DNA from: Cycas panzhihuaensis
Lineage: Eukaryota > Plantae > Cycadophyta
Assembly: GCA_023213395.1 (NCBI GenBank)
Contig: CM041465.1
Span: 172,801,741 to 172,865,740 of the forward strand
Direction of reading: 5' to 3'
DNA length: 64,000 bases
A model generated the notes under the pieces. It saw nothing but the letters and a program-made list of their open reading frames with translations, searched no databases and had not been told where the DNA came from. Shown piece after piece: positions 5,786-63,988 of this stretch; the first letter of the stretch is position 1; each line of letters starts with the position of its first letter. The position numbers and the translations under genes were made by a program.

Positions 5786-5861
5786 GTCATATATCTAAAT
5801 AAAATTATCATATAGTAAAATATTAAAAAACAAAAAGGAAAAGGGAGAAAATTTATTTAAA

Positions 5862-5884
5862 AGAGAGAGAGAGAGAGGTGGGGG

Positions 5885-5979
<95 letters not shown>

Positions 5980-6000
5980 TGTATGTATGTATGTATGTAT
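5862..6000. repeat. Compound microsatellite (AG)n, (AT)33, (GTAT)12
   Basis: Directly visible: AG run ~5862-5877, AT run 5887-5952, GTAT run 5953-6000. Confidence 0.98.
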
Positions 6001-6419
6001 GAGGCAAGTTTTGAAGTAAATTTTCTTTCAAAATACATTATACATTCCAAAAGGAATGATATCGAGAACACACAAAATAAAGGAATGCAGAGTGTAATTT
6101 TACACTATATGTTCCTGTGAGAATTTGAATGGGAATACATATGAAGATTAAAGGCAAATACCTAACTCAAATTTTCTTATTTCAATAAGAGCAAGTTCTA
6201 AAGTGATCAACATAACCATGTAAAAGTATTTTAAGCAAATTAGTAAGGAGTAAAGCATCTAAATTAACATACATTCTAAAGGCAAACACATGAAATATAT
6301 GTCAATTCTTTTTGCTAATAAACCCTTATTTTTATGTTTTATCTCATTAGTGTTAGATATTGCTTATTATTTTTTCCACTCTATCTAATATAAGAATCAT
6401 AGAATACTAGGTAAATTAT

Positions 6420-8585: not shown

Positions 8586-8918
8586 TGTTAAGAATAATAT
8601 TTACTTCAAGTATTTAGTATTTATAAAGGTGTATTTTCTCACATATGTATGAGCATGTAACCCCCATTCTTAAGTATTATGACTCCCATGTACTTTATAA
8701 CTCCTTTCTATTTTTATATGTTCTCTTTGTGATCGTGAGTATTGATCATATATAAATTTATATCATAGTTATTTATATTTATTAATGATAATTAAAAATT
8801 CATTCAAGTTTTGACCATATACTTGCATACTTTGTAATTGATGTAGTTGTCTCTATGTTTGTGTTATTACTCTATCAAAATTATGATAGTGTATGTTTTT
8901 TAATTCAAGTTTCTAACA
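8586..8918 (+). repeat. 5' LTR of Copia-1
   Basis: TGTTA...TAACA, followed by a PBS-like sequence; aligns to 26386-26713 at roughly three-quarters identity by eye. Confidence 0.9.
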
Positions 8919-16192: not shown

Positions 16193-16548
16193 TGTTTGGG
16201 AATATAAAATCATACACAAATGTTCCCATCTACAGGATCTTTAACCATACACAATAAGCAAACAAGAGTACACACAGAAAATAGATGCATAGTACATAAG
16301 ATTTATGTGGGAAAACCCTTTTGGGAAAAAACCCATCACAAAAGGATCCTTGATGGATCACATTGATTATTGCATTATTGCTTGATACATTGAATACACA
16401 AGAGCTCAAGGCTTTTATACTATTCCAAGAGGTGTCACCTGATTAGGGTTGTGACCCTTCAAATAAGTTTCACCTTTTTGCTTAATCACCTTAGTTAAAC
16501 CACATTAATATAAACATAGTGGCTTAATAATTAACTACCACGTTAACA
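16193..16548 (-). repeat. 3' LTR of Copia-2
   Basis: Direct repeat of 22112-22467; adjacent to the PPT (ccccccctca on +). Confidence 0.95.
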
Positions 16549-22111: not shown

Positions 22112-22467
22112 TATTTGGGAACATGAAATTATACACTAATGTCCCCATTTATAGAATCTTTAACCATACATAGTAAGCAAATAAGAGTACACACAGAAAA
22201 TAGATGCAAAGTACACCAGATTTACGTGGGAAAACCCTTTTGGAAAAAAACCCACCACAAAAGGATCCTTGATGGATTACATTGATTATTGTACAATTGC
22301 TTGATACATTGAATACACAAGGGCTCAAGACTTTTATACTCTTCTAAGAGGTGTCACCTGATTAGGATTATGACCCTCTAAATAAGTCACACTTTTTTGG
22401 TTAATCACCTTAGTTAAACTATATTAACATTAATATAGTGGCTTAACAATTAATTGCCATGTTAACA
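22112..22467 (-). repeat. 5' LTR of Copia-2
   Basis: Direct repeat of 16193-16548; abuts the tRNA-iMet PBS (ctctgatacca on +). Confidence 0.95.
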
Positions 22468-26385: not shown

Positions 26386-26713
26386 TGTTAGGAATACTGT
26401 TTACTTTAAATATTTAGTATTTAGTGAAGTGTATTTTCTCACATATGTATGGGGATGTAACTCCTATTCTTAGGTTTTAAGCTTCCAAGTACTTATAACT
26501 CCCTCATATTTTGGTAATTTCTCTTTATAACCATCAATATAGCTCATGCATAAATTTATATCATAGCTACTTATATTAGTTAATGAGAATTGAGAGTTCA
26601 TTGAGAATTTGTTAATATATGTGTACTTTATAATTGATGTGATTATGTCTTTATGTGTCATTATTTTGTTGAAATCATGATAACTTATGTACCTTTTATT
26701 CAAATTTCTAATA
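26386..26713 (+). repeat. 3' LTR of Copia-1
   Basis: Follows the PPT; homologous to 8586-8918. Confidence 0.9.
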
Positions 26714-29700: not shown

Positions 29701-30100
29701 CCAAGGGAATGGAGAGTGAGTGAAGATAGTGGTATATATAGAAGCACTCCATCAAGGATCAACATCAATATCATAGAGGGCCCTAGGGTTCATGTAAGGA
29801 GGGCTAAGGTACCATTTTTGCATCATTCATTGTATTTAAAATTTCTATTTTTTTCTATTAAAAACCTTCAATGAAGAAAGAACCATACAAATTCTCCTTT
29901 GATCATAATAAAGAATTATTATTATTTTTATATAAGAGAGCGATGATGGTTAGAGTTTGAATTTATACATCATTTGTACAATTGTATAACTCTTTTCAAA
30001 ACTATACAAATTTCTCCTAAACCACATTAACACCTTAAGAATATACTAATAATGGTATAGTTAAATTTTTATTTTTCTATCAAGTTTTCTTGGTGGAAAA

Positions 30101-33100
30101 TGTTAGAGTGGTATTATAACCACTTACCAATTAATGTAAATGGGTGGATATATTGAGCAAATAATATTGATGTAATATTATGATATTATGGGCTGATAGT
30201 TGTAAATTTGAATGCTAATATTTGAGGTACTTATGAATTATAAATATAGATAAAAGTCTATTGTATTGTAATATCCAGATTTATAAAAAATATAATAATA
30301 TATTTTTATGGTGAAAGGGTTCCCACGTTAAATTTGTTTATCTTATGTGCTTGTTTTATACATAAACGATTCTGTCATCCTATTTATATATTTGGTATTT
30401 TTAAACATGGTATCAAAGTACCACGAGGTACACAAGTAGACAAATATTAGATGGATTATTTGATCATTGGTTGCAAAGTCATGTTGGCTCTCCCTTTGAG
30501 GATTGACTTATTCAACAATCGAAAGAACAACCACAGTGATATAATGATTAAATACAGATCCTAGTGTCTTTTGTTTTCTATTTTGTAGGGATTCTATAGT
30601 CTTTATAGGTGTATGAATGAGTAGAATATGTTGTTTTAATTTATACAAGTGCTAGTGCCCTTGTTCTCAAATTTGTAACCCATAACTACTCTCTTGTTGA
30701 TCATTATGTTAGTTTTAAGTATATTAAAAGTGTTAAATCTAATTATTTAAAGTGCCACTAAGTTATAATGAGACATTTACTAATTTATATGCAACTGGCT
30801 CATGATTATAGAGGTTGGGAGACAACACATATGTACACAATTGTATTAATGTTACGTAGAAAATTGTGTTCATTATATTATACAAGTTTGCTATGACAAT
30901 CATACGCTAGATACCATAGGTATGAGATTACAGACTCAAGAAAATGTGACTGATTTATAGACTTAGAAGAGATGCAATGTACGTACTTACAAATTACAAC
31001 CGTGCGTGAAATAGTTACAGTCGCAAAGAAGGATTTGTAGGTGCTGTTTGAGTTTATAAATCACCATGGATATTTACACTGCATGTTGGATGTGCAGTGC
31101 CATAAAATCCATGTGAAGAGATGCAAAATTTGTAGCTAAGTCACTAGAAATATACTCAGGCTGTCATAATAATTACAGTAATATTAAGGTACTTTGATCA
31201 CATTTGATTAAATAATGTCACTGCGTTGAATATATACAACCGCCATGAATGAGATACTTCATCGCCATCGTAGGCATTTTATTTATTGGCCCATTCCATT
31301 ATTTAAATTATTCATTTGTTGGGCATTGAATAAATAAAGTTGCGTTTCAAAAATTAAACTTTGATCGCCGTTGCATTTTCCTATGATATATTAAGTTGAA
31401 TTCGATTAATATATTCGGTTGCCAATTAATATTTGCTATTGTCGTATCAATAAAGTTTCTCACATGATAAATATTTACCATTGATATATTTTGTCGTTTG
31501 TTGATTTATTTTAATTGCATAATACTATAGTTTGAATGCCATATATCAAGTCACTTAATTATCAAAGTTTTTTTTTTATTATTTTCATCATTTGCCCTTT
31601 GATTGAAGGATTTATTGATGGGCATACATCAAGAGTCACATTCATAATTGTTGTGTTTAAATAAGATTAAGATCAATGTGGATTTTAATATAATGATTGG
31701 TTAACATCATCATTCTTGATTACCATTCATTGTTGAGTATGATATAATGCTTTGATCAAGTGAGCATATTGTTGTGATTATCAAAATGGTGTAAATATAT
31801 AGAAAATGTTTTATTTTGATGTGATGATAATATGTAGTTAATGACGATATTTATGATATGATGGTGAAGTGAGTGCTTTAGACACACTCTATTGATGACT
31901 GTTTAGTGATATGAGTCAACGGTATACTCTTTTTTGTTTGTATTTATATGAGAGAGTGTGTTGGGTGAGTTAGCTATCAATGTTAGTGTATTTTCATTGA
32001 TTGATACAAGGGAAAGAATGGGTGAATTTTATGGAGATACTAAGTTGCAAGATGAGTAAAACTATGGTGTGGTAATTGGTCATTACATATTTATTCAAAG
32101 GTGTGGCTTATTTAATAAAAAGTAGTGTGTTTATTCAATTATATCAGTGTTTTTACATCAGATGTATGAGTGAAAGTGGTTTAGAATTGTTATTTATTGG
32201 CTTGTTTATATAAGTGGTTATTAATTTATGGTGGAACATTATACTTTAGGTGGTTGAATTTAAGTTAGCATGAGGCATATAACCTGTTAGATGTTAGTTC
32301 AATGTGTGTGCATATCTGAACAAGTCAGATGTATATTCAATTATATATTTGTAATAAAATTGAAGTGTGAATGGAAAGGTATATGACTAGATTGCTTTAA
32401 AATTCAGTTCTCCCTTGATCATGGTATAAAATGGGAATTGGCTATCTCGTGTACCCCAGTAAGATTATGTTACAGATGTATAATGGTACCATGATGTAGA
32501 TGTGGAGGTGCTTGATGTAGGGTAAGATTTTACCTCCCATATTTTTAGGTAGAAGTTGTTGTGATAATTGTTTTATGAGGTCTCTATTAGGACTATTTGT
32601 GGCATATCCTTTGAATTGTGTTAGATCAATTAGAAGCCTTCAATTATGTATTTGAGGTGCATTGAAATGCACACATCTTAGACAAAGATTGCAACAGTAA
32701 GATCATAAGAGTTCAAAGTATATTTATATGGGATTTGTGTTTAAAACAAAGCTTACAAATAGTATAATCTACATGGGAATTACATTGTGATTAGTCTAGA
32801 TGTCAATTTGAAAAGTTATTAACGTATCATACTAGGGTGTCACATGAATATAGGTTTTATCCTTTATTTCTTCCATTTTTCAAGCTATTGTTCAGTAGGT
32901 GTAGAGGTTTGTGTACCTAACATTGTGTTTGAGATGGAAGTAGGACCTAGTGGAAGTGATGATGAGGATTTATTGTATGAAGAAGCTTGGACTTCAACCT
33001 TGTGTTCTATTATGGACTAGGAGGACCATTGAGAACTCTAGTAAGACGGTTGAAGACTTAGAAGATGATTGAAGAATGAGGATCAACATGCCAGTCAGAC

Positions 33101-34087
33101 TCATGATAGCCATTAACGATTCTAACGAGTGGAGATTCATAATGGAGAGCTACTATATAGGAGGAGTATTATGTGGGATTTAGGTCGCTTACCTCCCTTA
33201 AAGAACTTGGTTAATTTGTAAGTTGGAAAAGCTTATTACACAAAATTTCATGTTGAAAGAAGGATTCAATTATAAGAAGACATTTACACTAATCTTTATG
33301 ATGTTATTAGTCTAATTGGTCCTTACTTTAGTAGCTACAAATAGGTGGGAGTCATATCATGTCAGTATTCCTTAATAAAGACTTGAAGAAGAGATCCTCT
33401 TAGTTTAGTGAAGGAACATGTTGAATATTATGGACTAAGTATTGGTGCTAGAGAGAGTTATATGGTTGCAAGGACTATTAGAGTATTTCTAAAGAATCAC
33501 GTATATATGAGACATATCACCATTACGTCTGAGAGTAGATCAGATTAGGGAAGATGTAGGTTGAGTTTTGTCTAAGTGAAGATCAACTTGAGGACATGTT
33601 CACCAAGCTCTTATTAAAGATCGTTTCATCAATGTTTATGCATATTTAGGATTTAACGAGGTTATCCTTGAGGGGGGATCTATCAACAAGGATAAAGAGA
33701 GATAGACAAATCCTTCGGAAGGTTTTAAGATCTCACATTTATATTAAGAGGGGATATTAAAGTGGTATTATAACCACTTATGGACTAATATAAATAAGTG
33801 GATATATTATGCAGATAATATTGATGTAATATTATGATATTATGGGCCAATGGATGTAAACTTGAATGTTGATATTTGAGGCACTTATGATCTATAAATA
33901 TAGATCAAAGTCCATTATATTATAACATTTAGATTTGTCAAAAATGTGATAATATATTTTTATAGTGGGTTTTTCCTGAAAAGGTTCTCACATTAAATCT
34001 GTTTGTCGCACATACTTATTTTATTCGAGTCCTCTATATACATAAATAATTTTATCATCTTATTTGCCTATTTGATGTTTCCTAATA
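30101..34087 (+). mobile_element. Copia-3: ~4-kb internally deleted, non-autonomous Copia derivative
   Basis: LTRs 30101-30407 and 33755-34087; TSD gaaaa/gaaaa; PBS tggtatcaaag at 30408; PPT aagagggga at 33746-33754. Only patches of INT ('DHGIKWELAISCTP'), RT ('EGFNYKKTF') and RH ('DMFTK') remain. Confidence 0.9.
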
Positions 34088-34244: not shown

Positions 34245-36650
34245 AAGTGGGGTTGAGGATATATTAGCACACGCCTCAAGGTCTATTATTGCTTAACATT
34301 GATAAATATTGAATAATTTGATAATAAAATATTTAGAAATAGCCCCAATATAAGTATTACCTAATATTTCTCCCCCATAATCTATATTTGGGAAGACTCC
34401 AAGCTTATCTCTAAATTTATTAAATTTTATTTTGTTAAGTGCCTTTATGAAAATGTCTACCACATGATCCTTTGTGCTCCTTTCACCTTACTATACTAGC
34501 TCTATAATGAAGTGATATTATATTTCAATGTGCTTAGTCTTGCCATGAAACATTAGATCATAGTCATTTGAATTATACTTTGGTTATCACAAAATAATTA
34601 TGTGGGACTAATTTATTCCTCCTATAAATCCTAAAATAACGTTCTAAGCCAAACTATCTCACAAGCTCTTATTACAACTACCTTATAATAAGCTTCTACA
34701 GTAGAAAGAGATATTGTTGTCTATTTCTTTGAACTCCATGATACTATTATTGAACTAAACTGAATGTATAACCTGAAATAGACTTCTTGTTACCTATGTA
34801 ACCTACCCAATCTAAGTTTATATTGCTAATTAACTTGTGATCACTTGATGACCTATGACATAATCCATACTTAATAGTGCCTCTAAGATATATAAGAATT
34901 CTTTTGCTTTCTTTCTAATGTTTTACCTTAGGCTTATGTAGAAACTTTAAAATTACATTGACTAAATACATAATGTTTGGTCAAGTTGAAGTCAAGTAAA
35001 TAAGGCTCCCGCTTAACTACTTGTAAAGAGTATAGTCAATTGATCCAAACCTCTCAAACTCAGACAATTTCAACCCAACTTCTACTAGTATTGTAAGTGG
35101 CTTGTAACTATCCATATTAAATTTATATAATATATTGTAATATAAATATTCTCTTTTTATCTTGCCATACTTCAATGCCTAAGAAATAATATATAAGTCT
35201 TAAATTTGTCATTTCAAGATCCTTGCATATCTTTCTTAAATTTTTAGTATAATTAATCATAATTTCTAATGTATACAAGGTCATCAACATATAAACTTAC
35301 AATCAATATTGAACTTTCTTTTATCTTAATATACAAGTTGGGGTCTAATTGGCTCCTTAGGAATCCTTTATCCTTAAAGTATGTATTAATCCTAGAGTAA
35401 TGTGCTATAGGTACAATTTGAACCCATATGATATTTTTTTGAGTTTATAGACCTTATCATCATTACTTTTCATCTTAAAATCTTTAAGTTGTTGGACATA
35501 TATCTCCTCATCAATATATTTATTTAAGAATACACTCTTCACATCCATCTTATGGATTATCCAACTATATTATATAACTAAGGTTATAATTAATTTAATT
35601 ATTTTTAATCTTGTTATATGTAAAAATGTTTCATTATAATCTATGCCTTTAACTTGAGCATAACCCTTTACAATTAGTCATACCTTATACTTGTCAATTA
35701 AGCCATCTAACTTATATTTAACCTTAGATATTAATTTTGTCCTAATGATAATTTTCTTTAGTGGTAAAGTACCTAAATCCCAAGTGTCATTCTTTCTAAA
35801 GCATTATATTCCTCTTTCATTGTTATCTTCCATTCATCTTGACTATTTATCTTTTCAAAGTTTTAAGGCTCATTTATTTTTATAACTTGTATCACTAATG
35901 TAAAGTTTACCCTTTGAGATCTAGTTATCATTTTCTTAAAGTTTATATCTAAGATGTCTTAAGGGGTATGACTCCTTTACACTCATTTTAGAACTTTTTG
36001 ATTTGAAGTAGATGGTCTTGCTCCATTTATACTAGCTAATATAAGTACGTTTGTACTATTTATGTTATGTTCCACATAAACCATAATACTTTTGCCTTTA
36101 TCATTTTCATCAACCTCTTCTTGATAGAATCAATCTTTATTGAAGATGGCATCCTTGCTCATGATGATTCTTTTCCCCTTAGGATTATACAATTTATAAG
36201 AACTTGATGTATTACTATAGCTTATAAATATGCACTTATAATTTTTTTTCATTTAACTTAGTCCTTCTTTGTTTTGAAACATGTGCATATGCTATGCACC
36301 AAAAAACCCTTAAGTATTTAATGTTTGGCTTATACCTTATCTAACCCTCTTCAAGTGTGATCCATCTAACTATTTTTGTTATATATTTATTCAATAAGTA
36401 AATAACTATATAAATAACTTATGCCCAAAACTCATTACTAAGGTGTTTATCCTTCAGCATACTCCTTATCATCTCAAAACCTATCTCATTTTTTCTTTTT
36501 GCTACTGTATTTTATTAAGGGATGTAAGGATTAGTTAATTACTTTCTTATTCCATAATACTTGAAATAGTCCTTAAATCAATTTGAATTAAATTCTCCCC
36601 TATTATCTAATATAAGAATTAATATTTTATAACCACTTTGTCTTCTCCAA
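34245..36650 (-). mobile_element. Copia-4: 3' half only (INT C-terminal part, RT, RNase H, PPT, partial 3' LTR)
   Basis: Minus strand reads 'QSGYKILILILDNRGEF' from ~36640, RT 'KMDVKSVFLN' and 'SLYVDDLVY', RH 'TKHIEI..HF..DIFIKAL'. PPT tgggggagaaa, then LTR starting at 34366; LTR end approximate. Confidence 0.85.
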
Positions 36651-37590
36651 AAAATCTTCTATCTGTGGGACAGATGATGGAACAAGACTATAAGGTTGTA
36701 TTTGATAATAGTGATTGCACTATTAAGGACAAAAAGAAGAACAAAGCTATTATTACAAAAGAAAAAAAGACTAAAGATAGATTTTTCAAGTTAGTTATAA
36801 CTCCTTCAGACAACTATGTATTGAAGACAACAATCAAGATAGATAACAACATGTGGTATAAAAGGTTTAGCCACCCAAATTATGGAAGTTTAGCCCTTAT
36901 GAAGAGAATGAATATGGTTGAAGCACTACCATAAATTGAAGCTGACAATGATATTTGTGAGGGTTGCCTTTTAGGCAAGCAATATAGAGAAAGTTTTTTT
37001 GATGGAAGCTATAGAGTAAAGAACCACTTCAATTAATCTACACAGATCTTTATGGTCTAATGGATGTCCCATCTCTAGTTGGTGCAAAGTATTTTCTCAC
37101 CTTCATTGATGATTATACAAGAAAGACATGGGTCTATTTTCTAAAATTCAAGCAAGATGCATTTCAATACCTTGTAGACTTCAAAATCTTTGTGAAGAAG
37201 CAAAGTGGACACAAGATACTTTCCCTAAGATCAGATAATAAGGGAGAGTTTATTTCTAATGAATTTAATACTTATTATATATACTATGGTATTATAAGGT
37301 AATACAAAAACCCCTATACTCAACAACAAAATGAGATTGTTGAACGAAAAAATCATACCATAGTTGAAATAGCTAGGTGCATGCTTAAATATAAGAAATT
37401 TGGACACGAATTTTAGGTAGAAGTTGTCCATACTATAGTTTACCTCCTAAAGAGGTGTACCACCAAGGCCCTTAGGTGGATGACACCAGAAAAAACATAG
37501 ATAAATTATAAATGTAGCATTCATCACGTGAGAATCTTTAGATACCTAGCCTATGTCGATGTTCCAGAACAAAAATAGATTAAACTTGAT

Positions 37591-38057
37591 TATTAGGAAT
37601 ATTAATGTTAGCTTTATATTATTGTTAGTTTTATGTTAATATTATCTTTTGATCACATGTGTAAATATAAATTTAAGTGATGTAAAGTTCTTTTTATATA
37701 AGCTAATGTTAATTATTAATTATTATATGAAGGTCATTGAAATGTGTAACTGCCCATTTTAACGAATCTTTCATTCTTTAAATAGCCTCTTATAGATTCT
37801 AGGAATTGGTTCCAGGAATCTAAGAGGCTGTCATAAGCCTATTTTGAAGGCTGGTTTCCGTATGTAGAGGGTATTCTTATCAAAGTTTTATGTAAGGTTT
37901 CCAAGTCAATAAATTTTAAACTTAGAGAGGTGTTTTCTCTTCCCCAGAAGGGGTTTTCCACCTGCCACATCATGTGTACATGTGCAATGCCAAATTTTCA
38001 CCTGTGTATGTTTGTTTATTTGATCCTGTGATATTGTACATACTACCTATCTTTACA
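37591..38057 (+). repeat. 5' LTR of Copia-6
   Basis: Direct repeat of 44505-44968; begins TA, ends CA, followed by the PBS. Confidence 0.96.
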
Positions 38058-38069
38058 TGGTATTAGAGT
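38058..38069 (+). promoter_or_regulatory. tRNA-iMet primer-binding site of Copia-6 (decayed TGGTATCAGAGC), overlapping the end of the FY fragment
   Basis: tggtattagagt directly after the LTR terminal CA; two CAG-context C>T changes from consensus. Confidence 0.9.
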
Positions 38070-38616
38070 AGGAGTAGAATTTTAAGTCTGTTCTAGAGAA
38101 ACTCAAGTCTTAGACAGCTTCCCTATGAGCTGACTTGTTTGCTTTGATATTATTCATATTGGTTTGCTAGTACTTGATAGAGCCACCATCATCACTAATG
38201 ACCATCCAATTTTTATTATGGCTCCATACTATGGACTTGATTGCCTGATCATGAGCCTAAAGAATCATTTCAAAATTGAATGACTCCCCATTCCAAAGAG
38301 TGAACTCTCCACTCTACAAGCCTGTGATTAGACGCTGTCTTGTTGGCATCCACAAGACTTTGTTAATGGAGCAATGATTTGTATTCATAGATGCATGCAC
38401 AAATTTAGCAACAAAGCTTGTTAATGGATTATCTGGATAAGCACTTGATCGCAACATATCTACAACTACAACTGGTGTAAGGTGCAAAATTGTACTATCC
38501 CTTACATCTCGTTGCCACATCCAAATCTGCATGTACCAGATAACTGTGCGTGTATAATCAACTGTTCGAAGATGTATATGCTTTCTGACCCTTCTAGCTG
38601 AGATCCCATCTCCATG
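38062..38616 (-). pseudogene. FY: Captured, uninterrupted fragment of FY (WDR33/Pfs2 orthologue, WD40 polyadenylation factor), N-terminal region and first WD40 repeats
   Basis: 185 codons with no frameshift and 4 decay-type stops: [40 protein letters not shown]...[18 protein letters not shown]...[100 protein letters not shown]. This matches plant FY as I recall it ([66 protein letters not shown]). Confidence 0.95.
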
Positions 38617-39112
38617 TTCTCGAGCCTTCAAGGAATCCATACGATGTAGGCTGATTCCAAGAACTTCCTGTTGCCCTTCGAACTTGCTATCACCGATGAT
38701 GATAATCTTTGCGGTGATTTGTACATTCGAGTGAGCAGAGCTCCTGACCAGTCTTTTGAGAACTGATGTATCATAGTGGGTAGCAGTGCGATGGTGTTCG
38801 TACAAAACTTGGCAGTGCGAAGGTGTTCCTCCCAGTGGCCTATTGATGCTTGCTCCCCACCGTGGCCCGCTGTCAAAGAACTGATCCTGCAACATTGAGA
38901 CATCTCCATAACTGACATGGATCCTCACCTCAACAAGCCGTCTCTCCTACAAACCATACGAAGATCGACCTGCAACAAACCTTCGTCGCCATGGAGAAGC
39001 GTAACATGTAGGGTTTCTCTCTTTCCCTCCTCTCGGATCCCAAATTACATCTTAAATCAATTTTCTTTTATAAAAATAATAATTCCATCTGGTCCACGTC
39101 TCCCTAACCCCC

Positions 39113-39116
<4 letters not shown>

Positions 39117-39176
<60 letters not shown>
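39117..39176. repeat. (AT)30 microsatellite inside the Copia-6 leader
   Basis: Directly visible. Confidence 0.98.
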
Positions 39177-39178
<2 letters not shown>

Positions 39179-41176
39179 CAAATCAAACCTAATCAACCTT
39201 AGGTTAATTAAAATTAACCTTCCCCTTATTATATTTGATTTATAAATCAACATTATCCCCTTTATTACTTTTATTATTACAATATCCCCCCCTTATATTT
39301 TATTATTTACCCCTATTTATTATATTTATTATTACATTAGCACCCCCCCCCCCCCTACATTTTATTATTAAAATTAACCCTCCCTAACTACATTTTTAAT
39401 GTTAAAATTAACCCCCTCTATTACACTTTAATATTAAAAATAGTGCCCTCCCTATTACATTTATAAATTAACAAAATACCCCCTCATTGCTTTAGTGTAT
39501 TAATATCTTTTTTAATTAAACCTTCATTTTTAATCAATAAAATCTAGCTATTACCCCCCCATTAAATATTTGGATATTAAACCCCTTTCCACACTTAATT
39601 TATAGATTTTAATTATGCCATTTAACTTTTTGATTCACAATAAATAAAATCAATAAAATATTTTTTTTTTAAATCAAATTAATATATCTTTAAATAAAAC
39701 TACATATATTTTTTTTTGCATTTTAACTCATTATTATTTTTCTAAAATTGTGGAAGATCTATAATAATCTTTACAAACTATTATTTGTTATAAAACTCGT
39801 TAATTATTAACAGTTAGTCAAAAGTTTTTTTTAATAACTTATTCATATCTGTTGTCTTCTTAAAATAATCAAAAGGGAATCTAAATACTCTTAATTATTA
39901 GTTTGTAAAGTTTTTTTTTTAAGTCTTTAAATAAACACTTAGCCTTTTTTACTTGTGATTGAATAAATAATTTATTCTTTAACAACAATAAGGGGGACTA
40001 TTAACATATTTTTTCTCAGAAAAGGGGAATATTTAATTCTTTTGCTCTAGGGGAAGGGTATCCAAATTTAATAACTATGGTTTTCAGTTTCTTATCATTC
40101 GATTAAACATGTTACTCTGATGTTTAGTAATTTCAATATAACTATTATCACTTATACTTATTCATCTAAATTTTCTAAATCTTTTGACTCAAACAGACTT
40201 CTAATCAGCATTTATAATTCCTAATATGGCACTAATACCAGGGACAATCACTTGCGTTATGATTCCAGTTCTAACTGGCTCAAACTATGCTGACTGGAGG
40301 AATTACATTTCCCATCAGCTTAAACAATAGAAGATATGGTGATATGTAATAGGTGAATTCAAAAACCAAAAGACGCAACTTTAGAAAGCTATATGGTATA
40401 TCTGATGAACTCTGATTCATCTCTAGGCCCCATCCTATTGTCACTCTCACCATAAATCAATCGACAGTTCTATGATACAAATGATCTAGCCACTGTCTGG
40501 AATACTCTTAAGGAAAAATATGATAAGGTCGACACACAACAATTGGCTGTCCTAGAACAACAATTGTATAACCTTAATTATGATGATTTTTTTAAAGTCG
40601 AAGACTTTTTATCCAAAATTTAACTAATTAATAAAGATCTAAACAACTGTATTAAAACTATAATTAAAGTAGGTGATGTAGAACAAATAGTCATACATGC
40701 TAAAGATGACGATACGCTCGTATATCTTGCGATAAACAAACTACTAAAATATTTTAATCTTTTCAAGACTGTTAGACAACAAGCTGGTATTCCTCTGATA
40801 ACTTATAATCAGTTGACAAACCAACTAATTGAACATCAAACGATATTAATTCAAATAGGAAAATTGAAAGATCCTTCTCAGGCTTTCTTTTCTAAATCAA
40901 AGCCTCAAAATAAAACCAAACATCAGAACAACTTTAATAGTAATCCAAAATTCAAAAAACCTCATAAAGGTCCACCTCCTAGTTTTCAAAATAATACTAA
41001 GTATTTTGGTCCACCTAAATATCAGAATACTTCCAAACAGTCTTTTTCAAATCAGAACTTTGTTAATCCTTCTCAGAGCATTAGTTGTGCCTACTGCCAT
41101 AAAAAAGACCCCACTATTGACGTTTGCAGAAGTATAATAACTTCAGAAGCCTGGAAAGCTTTTAAGGGATTGCAAC

Positions 41177-41226
41177 CCTGACCACAATCCTGACCACAAT
41201 CCTGACCACAAACTCGACCACAATCT
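41177..41226 (+). repeat. 12-bp tandem repeat (cctgaccacaat) x4 between gag and protease of Copia-6
   Basis: Directly visible; encodes (R/*)PQS units. Confidence 0.9.
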
Positions 41227-44200
41227 CATAATCACTCTTTAACGGTAATAACTTCTATATTTATTGCTCCATCTAATCAATCACCTCAATGGATCCTTGA
41301 CTCTGGTGCTTCCTATCACATGATAAGACGCTAGAAAAATTTATCTACTTATCAATATGATACTAACTCTGAAGAAGAGATTTCTTTTGGAAGTAGATCC
41401 TAACTCAAAGTAAAAGGATAAGGTGATGTCACTTTGAAAGATGATTCAATCAAGGATGTCTTCTACATGCCAGATTTGTTACCAAACCTTTTCTCTGTCT
41501 ACCAAATCTACTAGAAAGACCTTGTTGTTGAATTCTGAAAAGATAAATTTATTATTAAAAAACCATTAAATAAATTCAAACCTATTTCCTCTAGACATGT
41601 TGATCATAAAATAAGTCTCTATAGCCTAACTAGTTTATAAAATACCAAAACAAAGTCCTTTAGTGCCTTCATAGTCAAATTTGATCCAATCAGTAAACTA
41701 TGGCATGCACGATTTAACCATACTAGTTATGGAAAACTTTAGTACCTAAAAAGACATGACATGGTTCATGGTCTTCCACCTTTAAATACTGTTTATGGTA
41801 TCTACGAAGCCTGCGTAATAGGTAAGCAACACATAGATCCTTTTTCACATCAAACTCAATTCAGAGTGAAAGTTCCACTTGAACTTGTTCACTCTGATAT
41901 ATGTGGACCATTCCATGTAACTTCATATTCTAGCAGTCGTTATTTTGTCACGTTTATTGATGATTTTTCGAGAAAATATTGGGTGTACACACTTAAGACT
42001 CGTAATCAAGTGTTTGACATCTTCACTGAATTCAAAACACTTGTAAAAAATTAATCAAAATCGAAAATAAAAAAATTTAGATCTAATAATGGCAAATAAT
42101 ATCTAAGTGATAAATTCACTTTCTTTTGTAAGAAGCACAAAATTTAATTTCAGTATTCTGTTGCCTAGAATCCCCAGTAAAATGGTGTTGCTAAATGCAA
42201 AAACCGTACTCTTGTTGAAATGACTCGATGTATGCTACATATAAAGAGTCTTGACTTAAAGTTGTGGGCAGAAGCAATTTCCTGTTCCAACTATCTTTTA
42301 AACCGTTTACCTAGTAAATTTTTACAAAATGTTACTCTAGAACAAAAGTGGTCTAGACGAAAACCCTCAATTAAACATCTGAGACTTTTTAGAAGTATTG
42401 TGTGGGGACATATTTCCAAAGAAAAACATAAGAAACTCGATCCTAAAAGTCAAAAATATATCTTCATTGGATACAACGAAAAGAACAAAGCTTACAGACT
42501 TTTGGATCCAGTTACACACAAAATATCAATTTTACGTGATGTAATATTTGATGAAGAAGGATCCTCTTCAACTTCTACTTATGCAGAACTTCCTATTGAG
42601 AATCTATTAATCAATACCTATTTGGTTGACTCATCTGGAAAATAAATTAACCTTGAGACTATAGAATCATTACCCACACAAGTTCAGAATTAGACTCTAT
42701 CTGAACCAACCGTAATAGAGCCTTCTTCTCAAGCTAGCTCCTCATCTCAACCTATGACTACAGAAACAATCATAAACAAACAACCTGTATGGGTAAAGAA
42801 AACACTTTTTGACACTAGATCTAATGTAGGTAATCTTGTAGATACTAGGAGAACATATGCTCAAAAATTACATTCTAACTATATATTAATGGTTAAAATA
42901 ATGGCCAATAATGATCCTAAAACTTTTAAATAAGTTAGCAAAAATCTTGTATGGCAGGAAGCCATGCAAGTTGAATTTGATACTTTAAACAAGAATTTAA
43001 CTTGGGATCTTATTCCATCTTCACCAGGGAAAAATATAGTTGATTATAAATGGGTTTATCGAACTAAATACAATTCAACATGCGCAGTTGAAAAGCATAA
43101 AGCTCGCCTAGTTGTGAAAGGATTTCTCAAATCGATGGGATAGATTATAATGAAACCTTTGTCCCTATTGCAAAGATGAATACCATTAAAACTATTATTT
43201 CTCTAGCAACTAAATTCAACTGGGAAATCCATCAAATGGATGTCAAAAGCACGTTCCTAAATGGTGATCTTTAAGAAGAAATCTACATGTCTCAACCGCT
43301 TAGTTTTATTGATAACCTTAATTTAGTTTGTAAACTAAAAAAATCCATTTATGGATTAAAGCAAGCTCCTCGAGCTTGTACATAAAAGTAAATAATTATC
43401 TTACTCGAAACAGATACACTAGATATATCAGTGATCTAAATCTCTATTTTAAACGTGAAAACAAGAATCTTACTATATTAATCCTGTATGTCGATGATAT
43501 CATCATTACATGATCTTTAAAGAATAACATTCATAAACTAAAAATAATCTTAATGAATAAATTTGAAATGACCAATCTAAGTTTTCTACACTATTTTCTC
43601 GAATTACAAATTTACCAACACGATTAAAAAATAACCATATCTCAACCAAAATATATTTTAGACCTAATCAAATGGTTTAACATGGAAAATACTAAACTGG
43701 TTTCTAATCCTTTACAATCAGGAGTAAAATTATCTACTGATTATTCTGCACCCTTGTGTGATCCAACTTTATATAGGCAGCTTATTGGCAGCCTTATTTA
43801 TTTAACACATACCTGACCTGATATATCCTATGCTATTGCTTTATGTTCGTGTTATATGCAAAAACTACATGAATCACACTGGAAAGCTGCTAAACGTATT
43901 CTTCGATATCTTCAAAATACTATTTTTTATAGTCTAACTTATAATTCTTGCAGTAAACCTCTAACCTTAATAGGGTATATTGATTCAGATTGGGTAGGTG
44001 ACTCAAATGACTGTAAGTCCACATCAGGTTATGTATTTTTTATAGATTCCTCACCTATCATATGGTCTAGTAAAAAATGTAAGTCTTAGCTCTATCAACA
44101 ACTGAAGCTAAATATCGAGCACTTGTTGAAGTAAGCAAAGAAGCACTTTGGATCAAATCTCTCTTAAATAAAATTTGTCTGTTTCCTAACTCTTTTATAT

Positions 44201-44504
44201 AAATTAAAGTTGATAATCAAGGTGCGATTACTATTGCTACAAATCCAATTGCTCATTATAGAACTAAACACATAGAATTGTATCAGTATTTTATTCATAA
44301 TCTTGTTACTGATAATATTATTCATTTATCTTATTGTCCTACAGATCTACATGTTGTTGATATTCTTATCAAGTCATTGACTGAAGTCAAGTTTAAACCT
44401 GCGAGATTTGTTAAAGATAAAAGAAGTCTCCATCAAAGGGGGATCAATATGATGAAGACCTTCTTTATCTTCTATATTGTATAAAAGCTAACATTAAAGG
44501 GGGA

Positions 44505-44968
44505 TATTAGGAATATTAATATTAGCTTTATATTATTGTTAGTTTTATGTTAATGCTATTTTTTAATCACATATATAAATATAAATTTAAGTGATGTAAA
44601 GTTTTTTTTTATATAAGCTAATGTTAATTATTAATTATTATGTGAAGGTCGTTGAAATGCGCAACTGCTGATTTCAGCGAACCTCTCATTCTTCAAATAG
44701 CCTCTCATAGATTCTAGGAATTGGTTCCATGAATCTAGGAGGCTATCATAAGCCTATTTTGAAGGCTGGTTTCCGTATGTAGAGGGTATTCTTATCAAAG
44801 TTTTATGTAAGGTTTCCAAGTCAATAAATTTTAAACTTAGAGAGGTGGTTTTTCTTCTCCAAAAGGGGTTTTCCACCTGCCACATCATGTGTACATGTGC
44901 ATTATCAAATTTTCACTTATGTATGTTTATTTGATCCTGTGATATTGTACATGCTACCTATTTTTACA
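44505..44968 (+). repeat. 3' LTR of Copia-6
   Basis: Follows the PPT; followed by TSD ttgat. Confidence 0.96.
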
Positions 44969-47900
44969 TTGATGATAAGAGCACTAAGTGCATATTTATT
45001 GGGTATAGTGATGTGTCAAAATCATATAAGGTGTATGACCTAAATGAAAGAAAGGTTATGGTTAGTAGAGATATTGTATTTAAAGAATATGACTACTATC
45101 AATTAGATTATGTCTAAGATAAAGGCAAGAACATTATGATTAACTTTGATTCATCTCCCAAGTTCACATATGTGCCACCTAGACAATATTCAAGGTAAAA
45201 TGTTGGTGTATCAAGGCCAAGTGATGAGGGAACCTCTACTCAACCTCAAAGGTTTCTTAAACAGATTTAAAGAAGCCATGACTTGGATAACATATTAGAT
45301 AATAACTTTGACAAGATATTTACTCATTCACATTGAGTTAACTTCGCCCTTATAAGCTAAGTAATGGAAGTCCATGAGCCTCATACTTTTGAAGAGGCAG
45401 ATATTCATGATGAATAGAGATAAGCTATGGGAGATGAATATGATTCTATAGTGAAAAATAATACATGGGAACTCATTCATCTTCCTCCAAATAAAACATC
45501 CATTGGAACCAAATGGGTCTATAAGACCAAGTTTAGATCTTATAGATCTATTGTCAAATATAAAGCTAGACTAGTTGCCAATGGATATATATAAATAGAG
45601 GTATAGATTATAATGAAACCTTTGTTCCTATTGCTCGAATAGAGATGGTTTGTATGATATTGAGTCTAATAACTTAAAAAGATTAGGATGTTAATCAAAT
45701 AGACATTAAAAGCACTTTTCTTAACGGCTACATTAAAGAAGAAATATATGTTCAATAACCTAGAAAATAAAGTGTATAAACTTAAAAAGGCACTTTATGG
45801 TTTGAAACAAGCACCTAGAGCATGGTACTCTAGGATGGATAAATATTTCAGAGATTAAGGATTTGAGAGAACTCAATCGGATCTAAATTTGTATATCAAA
45901 ATCAAAACAGATTCCATATTAATTGTGAGACTTTATATTGATGGCTTGGTCTATATAGGAAATAACTCTCATCTTTCTAAAAGATTCAAGGATGATATGT
46001 ATAAAGAGTTTAAAATGATAGATTTGGGATTAATGCATTACTTCTTAGGATTAGATGTTTGGCAATATGATGATGGTATTTTTATTTCTCAAAGGAAATA
46101 TACTTTGGACTTACTCCAAAAGTTCAAGATAAATGACTGCAAGGCCTTAACCACACCAGTAGAAGTCAAAATCAAACTATCCAAACTTGATGACTCTACT
46201 CCAATTGATCCTATATTATATAGACAATTGATTAGAAGTCAAATATACTTGACATCAACATGACCTGATATCATGCATGCGGTTAGTATTGTATCAAGAT
46301 TTATGCAATATCCTAAATCTACACATTCGCAAGTGGCTAAATATATTGTAAGGTATCTAAAGGGTACGACAGACTAGGGGATACATTACAAACCTTTCTT
46401 AAATTTTAGGTTGATTGGATATAGATTTAGATTGGGCAGGTGATGTTGATGATAGAAAGTCTACTTCTGGATATACCTTTAGTTTAGGCTCAATAGTTAT
46501 AGCATGGAGTACCAAAAAGTAGAATACTGTTTCCTTATCTATAGTTGAAGCAGAATATAAGGCAGCAGTATCAGGTGTATGCGAAACAGTTTAGCTATGT
46601 TGACTACTTCATGATATCTAATTGGAATAGGATAGTCCTATAAAAATATGGTGTGATAATGAGAGAACTATTCAAATGACACGTAATCTAGTCTTTTATA
46701 GAAGAACTAAACACATTGAGATGCAACATCATTTCATTCAAGAAGTTGTCCAAGTAGGAGAAATAGAGTTAGTTTATTACAACACGGAAGATCAGACAAC
46801 AAACATATTTGCAAAGGTACTTAGAAAAGTTAAGTTCTATAAATTCATAGATAAACTTAGAGTTACACAAAATAAACATTATGAGAGAGAATGTTAGCAC
46901 ATATAACATTCATTTTGTTAAAAGTGTGCAATTGGACTTTGGGAATCCATGGGGCCACCTACAACCATCTATAGTTGACTTAAGAAGGGGTAAGTATTAT
47001 TTTATTATTTTTATTTGAAAAAAAATGGTCGATGGAAAACTCCCTCCCAACGTCCCAACTATATATTTGTGGTGAATTATTTATCGATATTATTTAACAC
47101 CACTAACTATTAGAAATTTGTTAATATTTTTCATCAATATGGATTGATACTATTATACTTTGTCCCCGGTTTGTACTTAAAGTTCATCTATATCATTGAA
47201 CTGCCTACATATGTTTAGTGAGAGAGAGAGGTTAAGACGGTGCCCAGGGCTTTATCACAAATCATCAGATAAATCATATAGATATCTGATTTAGTATTAG
47301 AAGGTTTTGTAAACTCTTTAGTTATGTATCGTCAAAAAATTTATTGTATGAACAAGTAAACAATTCCTAAGGGGAAATATTTTAAAGGTTATGATATTTA
47401 TGCCAATTCCCTCTTGATGATTCCATTGGTCTTTTTATGTGAGTTGGTAAAGTAATAAATGAACATATACCTACATATAATGTTAATCCTCTTTAGAGTA
47501 TGATTAAAAGTGGAGTTTATTCTAATTACCTTCTAAATTGCCTTGTGCTTTTCTAAAACTTTGAAGAGAAAATATAATCATAAAAACAATGTATTAACAT
47601 AATTCTAAACCATGCAAAGAATAAATATCATAAACAAACTAAGCACACAACAAAGAACACCAAGAGATTCAGGTCTAAGCATTGACCTTTTATTAATTTG
47701 AGCAATAGTTAAAGAATTACAGAGATGAAAACCCCAACTATTCTCATCGACTCATTAAAGACTCATCCAACATTTTATATGTGCCATTATATAAGAATAT
47801 ATAGATATAATTTTATAAGACACCACCTTACAATTTTACAGTATAATAGGCATAAATGACAAAGGGACTCAGATGTAATGCCTATATTCATGTAACACTT

Positions 47901-54800: not shown

Positions 54801-56250
54801 TAAAATGATAAAAATTCACTTTATATTGTCCTCTATTAAAAAACCCTTTAGAATAGTATAATAAAACTTTCAATTGATGAAAAATAACTTAAGAAAACTT
54901 ATTTTAAACTTAAAAAGGTTCAATTAAAAAGAAAATATAGCTTGGATATGCTAAATTTGATATTCTAAAGCTGATACACTTTAGAAATTGAAAAGATAAA
55001 GTGTATTGTTAAAAAATAGAACATGTAGTGGCAAATTTTTTTATGCTTTAGAGACTGATATCTTATCAATTGAGTAATGGATTTGAATTCCATTAGTTGT
55101 TGTGCATTTGCATCATCAAGAAGACACAAATGAATAGTCATATACTAATGTTTTGTTAAATGAAACAATGTTTAGCATCAAAATTCTCCAAGAGGGACGT
55201 ATGACCTGCCAAAGGAAAAATCGACTTTAGAAATTGATAAAATACTTGAAGCCACAATTAATAGGCCTAGATCGAGTCTTATTAATAGTGCATAGGCTCT
55301 AGAGTTTGAAATGAAGTGAAACGAGGCTTAAATAAACTATGGACAACTATTTATAGTTAAACGGGGTCGTGTGGGTCTATTTGAGTGAAAATGGACCAAC
55401 TGAGCACAAAACAACCACGTTCACTAGCGTATACACATTAGGTCCAAGGGTTTTTACTCTAAAAAGTGTTAGAACGAGCTGTAGAAAAGCCAAGAAGTAA
55501 ATTTCTACTATGGACAATTGGAAAGGAGCTTATAAAATTTGGTAACTGGTTCTAGCAGTTGAATAAAACTTTTACAATAAATAACAAATAATAAGGGAGT
55601 TATTGGCAGTGCCCAGGACTGTGTGGTAACCTGTTACCTGCTTGTAAGATGAGTGTTTGCTAGAGAAAGTAAAAGAAACTAGCTCTGATACTAAATGATA
55701 AAGTTAGAATTAATCTAACTAATGAAAATTAATTTTAATAGGATCTTTATTCTCTTAACCAACATACGATAAACTCATCAACATACAAAGCATATTAAGT
55801 ATATATTAAATGAACACAAGATATAAATAGAGAATTAGAAATTATCTCTAATATAAAAGAATAACCATATCAAATTGATTGATGATTGATACATAACTCT
55901 AGTAGAGTTTGGACTCTCACAAAAAAAAAGTTCACATGAGTGTAGACATGGCCTTAATTTATAGAGAGCGCAATGTTTATCACTTACAATAGGTGGATGT
56001 GGATTGGACCTCATATTACATAGGTTTCAATGGATAGTAATGAGATTTAAAGTGGGGTGTTGACCCTCAACTAAAAATTACAACATCAAGTCATAACTTA
56101 AGTTACAATTGTATTTTATCTAAGCAAAGTGACCAACTTTATAAAAAATTATATGAAGGAGTCATTACATTTTAATAAAGACTACTATAATTCTTAATAT
56201 AAACCCCTAAAACTACTAGACATCTGAAGACACATAGGGTGAACTTACAA
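48880..56250 (-). mobile_element. Copia-7: 5' half (5' LTR, PBS, leader, gag, PR, INT); RT/RH/3' LTR missing; interrupted by a solo LTR; outer limits approximate
   Basis: PBS gctctgatacta at 55682-55693 with LTR from 55696. gag 'KLFGSNNF' ~54030 and UBN2-like 53500-53780; knuckle 'FYYDKLGHV' ~53290; protease 'S*LINSSATHHLT' ~50150; integrase 'TPEEAWS..KPTVPHLRTF' ~48980. Confidence 0.82.
50258..53074 (+). mobile_element. Probable 2.8-kb solo LTR (long Gypsy-type LTR) inserted between the gag knuckle and protease of Copia-7
   Basis: TGTCG...CCACA termini; sharp rise in GC and CpG; TATA-like gggtatatatccc at 50913; no coding motifs; Copia-7 is collinear on both sides. TSD imperfect (tggac[a]/tggcc). 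Confidence 0.65.
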
Positions 56251-62234: not shown

Positions 62235-63988
62235 TGTAATGGAAACAACATTCATAAAGACTATCACCCCCACATGGACAAAATTGGTTATCAGAACAAT
62301 ATTGACTCATTATAGATGTATTGGATAAGAAGAGTTAAGGAGATACAAGAAGAGCAACAACCTTTTCTTTTAGTTGGAGATATAAGAAGACCCGTAAGAA
62401 TTTCTTGGAGTTGTTAAACAAGGCCCCTAATCGAGAGCTCTCGTCATTAGCTAAGTATGTTTGGTGATAAGTCGGTATGTGAAGTGAGGTGTGACTAAAT
62501 GCCAATTTCCAAACCTTAGACAACACTCATTCAATACCAAGGGGTATAAGATAAGTAGCGGGATTGTATATGTTTTCTTTTTCAATTTCTCTCATCTTCT
62601 TATATCCCTTTTGATTTTTCTCAACAAAAAAAGAAAAAACATTAGAAACAAAGCATGAGTCAAACCTATGTTCATGAAATTTCACTTTAAGTCTCTAGGT
62701 TGCTTATGTTTTACAAGTTGCACGTTGAGTCAACCCTATGTTGTATTTTTTATTGAACCTCTATGGACCTTTTTGTTGTGCAATTGTTTAGTTCTTCCCC
62801 TTCACACCCCCTCTTCCTGTAAGAGGGCTAATTTGCTTGGGACCCCCCAAATCCCAAGCAAACACCTTGATCAAAGGTAGTTGTAGGCCTAAGGTGACTA
62901 ATTGTTGGAGAAAATGGATTCATAAATATAAGTTATACAGGTGGCAAGTGATTCAACTTTTAGGCATCTAAATTTTTGGCTTTAATCTTCTAGATCTCTA
63001 TCTACATATAGGTTAGATGCTCTTATGTATTTTTGAGTATCTATGTCATTTTGGCTCTCTAACATGGTGAATGCATGACAGCATTATAAAACTATAACTA
63101 TCCTACTGAAAGGAATTCTACCATGGTTGATGTGTGGGTATTTTTCCCTAACAATGGTATTGTAGTATTTTATTCCATTATGAGTGTGTGTGAGCTTAGA
63201 TATGGCAACATGCCTGAGACTAATGTAAGCCAATTTTAAACATGGTGAAATTTCGTGCATGATGTGCCATTGCCAGTTCCAGCCTACTATGTTACCATCG
63301 TAGGATACCTTGCTACAATTACTATAGTGTAAATCAAAGTTGCAAAGCTTATGATGATAAGGTTATGCTATGTCTATTTATGCAATTATGGAGCCATAAC
63401 ATTTTTGTTGTTGAACCATAGAGCTCTATATAAATCTTGCATGTTGGAATGGTGATGATCGTTAAGCCACAGTGATAAATCTATGTGCTATACATTTAAT
63501 AATTGTCAAGTTGTCATGTTTGTGTTTTGATGATATGAAAAATGAGATGAGAGTCTAGAGCCTACTAATCAATACTTCTTTGTTTGTTTCCTAGATCTAA
63601 ATTCATGAATGAATTCTCCACAAAAGTTTCCAATTGGTTGAGTGGTGAATACCCACTAAGCAATCTAATTTTTTCCCACATAGATAAGTTCTCATGTTCT
63701 GATTCTATTTGATTACTTTTATGAAGTTATGCAATGGTTTATTAAATTGTATTTAATTACTCTTTTATGAGATGTTTTATGCATTGATGATGATACTGAA
63801 TTATGTATGTATGTTTGTTAGAGAGGGCCTATCATTTGCATTATAGTATCACATAGCTTTCATACATAATCATGTATCTCCAAACTTCTTGAATGACATG
63901 TTGCTTGTTGTTCCTATGATTTCATTGCATTTGTTTTCTTGAGCTCACACAATCATACATGAGTGGTCATTTTAGGTGGTATCAAAGC
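62235..63988 (+). mobile_element. Probable 5' LTR (~1.7 kb) plus tRNA-iMet PBS of an LTR element continuing beyond the window; LTR start tentative
   Basis: tggtatcaaagc at 63977-63988 after ...catttta+gg; candidate start tgtaatg at 62235; non-coding and TG/ATG-rich like Tekay-type U5 regions. Confidence 0.55.

Follow-up and report, generated by a model that had tools for sequence, protein, structure and literature searches.

Gene capture by LTR retrotransposons is known, but the route by which host fragments enter these elements has mostly been guessed. Here, we ask how a fragment of FY, the plant polyadenylation gene, came to lie antisense between the PBS and gag of a Ty1/Copia element, and what, if anything, it does there. 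The locus keeps a readable junction, in that the captured sequence (hereafter, the cargo) begins inside the PBS and runs antisense toward the 5' end of the FY mRNA, and this junction points to a specific, testable step of reverse transcription, either the transfer of the plus strand or a priming event that uses a cellular mRNA. All coordinates refer to the window, i.e., the whole stretch of DNA that was analyzed (64,000 nucleotides).

The element that carries the cargo occupies positions 37591-44968 and is bounded by a perfect 5-bp duplication of TTGAT (Table 1). Its integrase lies upstream of its reverse transcriptase (rve, SH3_retrovirus, and RVT_2 follow one another), which is the order typical of Copia. 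The two LTRs differ by 30 transitions, 4 transversions, and 5 gap columns (91.7% identity), for a K2P distance of 0.079. Rates of 1.3e-8 and, for gymnosperm-type evolution, 2.2e-9 substitutions/site/year are used for LTR dating; they would place the age of the element at roughly 3 My and roughly 18 My, respectively. The PBS departs from the canonical 12-mer at two positions, both of the C>T type, the canonical plant Copia PBS being TGGTATCAGAGC(C), complementary to tRNA-Met (PMC3852365). The gag-pol region is broken by many stops and retains no ORF above 141 aa, leaving the element short of the intact gag-pol that autonomy demands. The FY-carrying copy is now dead.

Table 1. Features of the FY-carrying Copia element and of its cargo, in window coordinates.
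Feature	Position	Strand	Basis or remark
Target-site duplication TTGAT, left copy	37586-37590	.	alignment of both LTR flanks
5' LTR, 467 bp, TA...CA	37591-38057	+	pairwise match to 3' LTR
PBS TGGTATTAGAGT	38058-38069	+	directly after 5' LTR; 10/12 vs canonical tRNA-iMet 12-mer
Shared 8-nt crossover zone	38062-38069	.	PBS positions 5-12 = antisense of FY codons Cys-Ser-Asp
FY/WDR33 fragment, plant FY exons 2 to mid-8	38070-38619	-	no introns, no indels, 4 in-frame stops
In-frame open continuation, ~103-104 codons	38620-38928	-	ORF 38314-38928
5'UTR-like stretch	38929-39116	-	CpG obs/exp 1.14, AAACCCT motif, TATAAAAG at 39064-39071
(AT)30 microsatellite	39117-39176	.	
AT-rich non-coding leader, 1.05 kb, 23% GC	39177-40225	+	~34-bp degenerate repeats, C-runs at 39355-39485
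Degenerate gag-pol	40226-44480	+	gag start ~40226; longest ORF 141 aa
rve	41761-42054	+	domain match within gag-pol
SH3_retrovirus	42220-42645	+	domain match within gag-pol
RVT_2	42964-43513	+	domain match within gag-pol
PPT AAAGGGGGA	44495-44504	+	just before 3' LTR
3' LTR	44505-44968	+	91.7% identical to 5' LTR
Target-site duplication TTGAT, right copy	44969-44973	.	LTR-flank alignment

Nested Copia debris surrounds the element, and when the flanks of the target-site duplication are rejoined they form one older integrase frame (...KLD|DKSTKCIFIGYS). This older Copia, on the plus strand with gag_pre-integrs and rve matches, lies at 36638-37590 and from 44974 onward, split by the FY-carrying element. 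The leader between the microsatellite and gag contains C-runs of up to 13 within its repeats and has no similarity elsewhere in the 64-kb window; positions 39177-40225 are either the element's own leader or additional cargo. Searches of the window for another member of the family, or for a leader module in common, recovered only self-matches and the TA microsatellite. A TA array at 5820-6004 resembles the (AT)30 of the leader. Rfam and tRNA scans returned nothing.

What, then, is the cargo? On the minus strand, positions 38062-38616 contain 185 FY-like codons in a single frame, colinear with FY and free of indels, with 4 stops. Human WDR33 chains in the PDB match the fragment at E 6e-12, plant FY representatives were recovered by exhaustive HMMER search at E 1e-30, and tblastn with a plant FY protein as query (P0002) gave E 1e-88. 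The closest protein is a Ginkgo FY model (Gb_40875; P0181) at 75% identity, followed by Wollemia FY (P0182) and P0180, both at 73.5%, and by angiosperm FYs at 64-72%. At the nucleotide level, the closest match (L003; 547 nt ungapped, 79%) comes from a metagenome sample and is an FY transcript in one contiguous piece; its nearest named relatives are gymnosperm. The host is therefore probably a gymnosperm, perhaps one resembling Ginkgo. The fragment covers the conserved N-terminal region and the first WD repeats, and its last residue corresponds to P0002 position 244; a complete seven-blade WD40 propeller and an open frame are both absent. Judged by these matches, the cargo is a copy of the first third of FY (FY/WDR33/Pfs2, a CPSF subunit). 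Pfam assigned no family to the cargo ORF, and a protein homologue search with the 204-aa ORF, restricted by a length window and a word index, returned nothing.

These results bear out much of the initial annotation, which had placed 185 contiguous FY-like codons opposite gag-pol, between the PBS and gag of an element with both LTRs and a perfect target-site duplication, and had expected FY/WDR33 as the best match. Its description of the copy as uninterrupted stands for introns and indels and fails for the reading frame, given the 4 in-frame stops in 185 codons. Its estimate of the insert at ~550 nt was too low: the cargo measures ~0.9-1.05 kb, with the frame open to 38928 and a 5'UTR-like stretch continuing to ~39116.

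This longer extent concerns the region upstream of demonstrable FY homology. The homology breaks at ~38620, which corresponds to the exon 1|2 boundary of plant FY genes; FY is variable in exon 1. Beyond the break, the frame remains open in phase (Table 1), and the probability of 103 codons without a stop arising by chance is ~0.005. An hhalign comparison of ORF residues 1-102 with plant FY N-termini found no similarity; the resemblances are short only, such as RSSAHSNV against RQPSMMSSNV and MDS...HGDG against MES..HGDG. The CpG observed/expected ratio rises from 0.25 in the WD part through 0.6 to 1.14 in the putative UTR. We consider positions 38620-39116 likely to represent FY exon 1 and the 5'UTR, an assignment that is putative. 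Within 38929-39071 on the minus strand, there is also a short upstream ORF, along with the AAACCCT motif and, ~135 nt upstream of the main ORF, TATAAAAG. The Ginkgo model itself (P0181; eukprot Gb_40875) begins MESNAHGDG, just 5 residues ahead of the conserved block. Conifer FYs have ~43 residues ahead of that block, and P0181 may lack exon 1.

The absence of introns identifies the kind of template. In four plant genomic contigs (L010, L038, L051, and L058), the same residues are split into eight exons, with limits at P0002 residues 1-58, 57-90, 88-113, 111-147, 148-180, 178-207, 207-230, and 231-269. The intervening introns measure 75-775 nt, and 6-7 of them fall inside the cargo span. Aligned as DNA to the window, genomic FY loci match in blocks only, with breaks at ~38527, 38468, 38358, 38257, and 38171; the protein map adds exon breaks at ~38103 and ~38620. 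The loci used here are metagenome contigs, compared exon block by exon block rather than through a joined spliced model. The window is continuous across every one of these break positions. Likewise, truncated FY gene models stop or run into introns (GTN codons) after AAAID, INRVL, MILQ, and SLTG. Because native plant FY genes have introns across the span and the window has none, the spliced-mRNA origin holds; it had been proposed earlier on the grounds that FY is intron-rich, and the 6-7 introns are now seen on real plant loci.

The most informative part of the locus is the join between the PBS and FY. Bases 38058-38061 (TGGT) fit the PBS and not FY, while base 38070 fits FY only, the canonical 13th PBS base being C. 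The eight nucleotides between them belong to both (Table 1), and the cargo consequently ends exactly at the one tRNA-like site of the FY mRNA. Among 21 distinct plant FY sequences, 9 encode Cys-Ser-Asp as TGC TCT GAT, giving GCTCTGAT, the 8-mer with which the tRNA-iMet 3' end (GCTCTGATACCA) begins. This 8-mer occurs in 27 of the 67 FY loci (415 kb searched), nearly always at the Cys-Ser-Asp codon site. Four native FY loci go further: at Cys-Ser-Asp-Asp-Thr they carry GCTCTGATGATACCA (L010:5456, L011:5532, L013:4466, and L041:222). This sequence contains the complete 12-mer, its GAT occurring twice, and mimics the tRNA-iMet 3' end almost perfectly. The second Asp codon is missing from the window, as expected with a crossover inside the 8-mer.

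The microsimilarity at this proximal junction extends to as many as 8 nt, with the FY side judged from the FY sequences of other plants. For the donor, the codons at the breakpoint and the mRNA 5' end are likewise reconstructed from other plants. For a random junction to match six unchanged and two transition-compatible letters, the odds are ~6e-5. The PBS-complement 12-mer, exact or decayed, was found in 0 of the 67 FY loci, among which no parallel capture was thus seen. The tRNA-like site in FY is a conserved coding coincidence, one that may make the gene prone to capture. The join falls at a point of likeness between the FY mRNA and the end of the primer tRNA, so the locus looks like the fossil of a reverse-transcription accident and not like a working weapon.

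We propose that the locus is probably a fossil of LTR-retrotransposon-mediated retroposition, in which FY mRNA was copied from the PBS via the tRNA-iMet-like site and the product then integrated and decayed. Spliced host FY mRNA would have been present during Copia reverse transcription, with its Cys-Ser-Asp(-Asp-Thr) codons mimicking the 3' end of initiator tRNA-Met, the primer of the element. In the element, the plus strand is complementary to FY mRNA, so reverse transcriptase would have copied FY RNA starting at the PBS. This could have occurred in two ways. In the first, plus-strand strong-stop DNA with the 3' end ...ATCAGAGC would anneal to the mimic and be extended to the 5' end of the FY mRNA. 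In the second, a piece of FY RNA with its end at the mimic would prime minus-strand synthesis in place of the tRNA, and this primer could later be copied through because it does not carry the modified base that normally stops reverse transcriptase. The product of either route would be an LTR-PBS-antisense FY molecule whose FY part starts in the middle of exon 8 and extends back through exon 1 into the 5'UTR. This chimeric DNA would re-join the element upstream of gag and integrate into the older Copia with the TTGAT duplication, and the whole element, cargo included, would then decay by transitions of the methyl-cytosine type (C>T/G>A). Both routes account for antisense orientation, a lack of introns, 3' truncation at the mimic, and retention of the 5' part of the mRNA.

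The timing of capture can be approached through the pattern of decay. All 4 in-frame stops are of the C>T/G>A type. Compared with the closest FY transcript (L003), from which ~21% of nucleotides differ, codon positions 1 and 2 show 33 C>T/G>A changes against 6 in reverse (p = 1e-5), while codon position 3 is symmetric (22 against 25). C>T and G>A are equally frequent, as in the deamination of double-stranded methylated DNA, and of the 42 residues at which the cargo departs from the Ginkgo FY model, 28 are explained by a single change of either kind. At residues that plants keep invariant, C>T/G>A is seen at 19 of the 101 C/G sites whose original state could be inferred, compared with changes at 4 of 133 A/T sites. 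The FY copy is a pseudogene with methylation-type decay and without protein-level constraint. In each LTR copy, ~15 of 152 C/G sites have changed, against the 19 of 101 in the cargo (Fisher p = 0.06). Decay of the cargo is thus at least that of the LTRs, which argues that the cargo is not younger than the integration. That the fragment travelled with the element, as the initial annotation supposed, is most likely correct, given this decay and the tRNA-like microhomology to the PBS.

The first alternative is that the cargo never moved with the element. A break at or near the PBS could have been repaired after integration, by microhomology-mediated end joining or synthesis-dependent strand annealing, with an FY cDNA, or an FY retrocopy from elsewhere in the genome, as filler. 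Such repair pathways also use microhomology, as is seen at the junction; the cargo is present as a single copy in a window that contains no other family member; and the distal junction lies in AT-rich, microsatellite-bearing DNA. However, repair would require both a break exactly at the PBS and a filler ending at the only tRNA-like site of FY. The 5' part of the mRNA is kept and the 3' part truncated at that site, as if synthesis began there, and the cargo has decayed at least as far as the LTRs. We regard post-integration repair as unlikely.

A second alternative, which we judge very unlikely, starts from a sense capture: FY would have entered in sense just ahead of gag, through an ordinary minus-strand template switch at a tRNA-like 12-mer at the gag start, and the segment between the two inverted 12-mers (PBS and gag start) would have flipped later. 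An inverted PBS-like 12-mer is indeed present on the minus strand at 40229-40240, within the first gag codons (ATG GCA CTA ATA CCA), such that PBS-like sequences in inverted orientation bracket 38070-40228, and published transduced fragments are mostly sense (PMC7264820). This history would nevertheless require two rare events, and 12-nt repeats are very short for an inversion. The 12-mer at gag agrees at 10/12 positions only, a level at which ~3.6 chance matches are expected per 64 kb, and the other Copias of the window have no PBS-like 12-mer at gag. Its presence here hints that the history of the element was perhaps more complex.

The idea put forward in the initial annotation, that antisense FY transcripts pair with FY mRNA as a counter-defence, either yielding siRNAs that would impair polyadenylation or tying the silencing of the element to that of an essential gene, is extremely improbable. 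Transcripts from the 5' LTR of the newly formed element would have carried ~0.9 kb of anti-FY sequence, as judged from the structure of this one copy, and captured fragments are known to come into epigenetic conflict with their donor genes in maize and gymnosperms (PMC13477047), but the cargo shows no sign of constraint, has the spectrum of methylated junk with ~21% nucleotide divergence and 4 stops in the FY frame, sits in an element whose gag-pol is dead, and owes the choice of FY more simply to the tRNA-like site. Nothing in the sequence supports a present function of the cargo.

Two further origins were considered and rejected. A LINE-type processed pseudogene would share with the cargo the intron-less copying of a spliced mRNA. 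The cargo differs in that it has no poly(A) (the FY 3' end adjoins the PBS without an A/T run), is truncated at the wrong end (3' missing, 5' present, where a LINE copy is 5'-truncated), and lacks a target-site duplication of its own. Read-through transduction of genomic flank fails on the missing introns and on the position of the cargo, which does not lie beyond an LTR end.

Under the favored reading, i.e., copying of FY mRNA from the PBS, the locus resembles several known systems and departs from each of them. Its nearest relatives are the retrocopies formed by microsimilarity-dependent template switching in LTR-mediated retroposition (Tan et al. 2016, PMC5131818), a process with precedents in the yeast Ty1 chimeras of Derr 1991 and Schacherer 2004, as cited in PMC5131818. 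In both cases, an intron-less partial mRNA copy resides in an LTR element, a short sequence is shared at a fusion point (for FY, probably the proximal one), and both LTRs are kept. Unlike those retrocopies, the FY cargo is antisense, is joined to the PBS itself rather than to an arbitrary internal site, reaches the 5' end of the mRNA, and does not replace gag-pol. An antisense, PBS-joined, and 5'-reaching cargo argues for a plus-strand synthesis or priming step rather than a minus-strand template switch.

Similarly, Bs1 of maize and other LTR transductions place host gene fragments between LTRs (PMC13317346, PMC7264820). Bs1, however, is an expressed chimeric ORF, whereas the FY cargo is a decayed antisense relic. 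Antisense coding-like sequence within an LTR element is also a feature of Grande, RIRE2, and Retand, whose additional ORFs are located between pol and the 3' LTR, are conserved across copies, and have no host homologue (PMC7264820). In contrast, the FY cargo is clearly a piece of a host gene, and it is located between the PBS and gag. Finally, massive capture of exon fragments by transposable elements, with epigenetic conflict, is reported for gymnosperms in the available sections of PMC13477047 (Muyle et al. 2021 cited there). The present locus matches that setting in its gymnosperm-like host, its coding fragment within Ty1/Copia, and its heavy methylation signature, but the same sections describe neither a PBS-anchored antisense architecture nor a tRNA-mimic breakpoint. 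Our literature search found no account of PBS-anchored antisense capture, which is not proof of its absence.

Taken alone, the locus holds a dead pseudogene fragment that shows no sign of function. Its wider relevance lies in the mechanism, under which host genes that contain a tRNA-iMet-like site are predicted to be at risk. If the architecture proves recurrent, it would constitute a distinct capture pathway with antisense host sequence in element transcripts as a by-product, and such a by-product would bear on the epigenetic conflict between transposable elements and their hosts. We raise, as a tentative and still doubtful extension, the possibility of a systematic route in which host mRNAs that mimic tRNA-iMet are used at the PBS, either as acceptors for plus-strand strong-stop DNA or as surrogate primers, and are copied to the cap. 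The antisense cargo would then transpose with its Copias and yield anti-donor RNA while young, and FY would be one fossil of many. When antisense segments from the leaders of three other Copias in the window were compared with Pfam, none matched, which is a weak test in that the FY ORF itself is also Pfam-negative.

Other LTR-type features are scattered through the window. One further LTR pair occupies 16195-16494 and 22114-22413, with a minus-strand PBS at 22100; another, at 30100-30313 and 33754-33967 with a PBS at 30408, encloses an internal sequence of only ~3.3 kb. Additional PBS matches are present at 55682-55693 on the minus strand and at 63977-63988 on the plus strand, and a repeat pair at 8586-8821 and 26386-26619 is separated by 17.8 kb.
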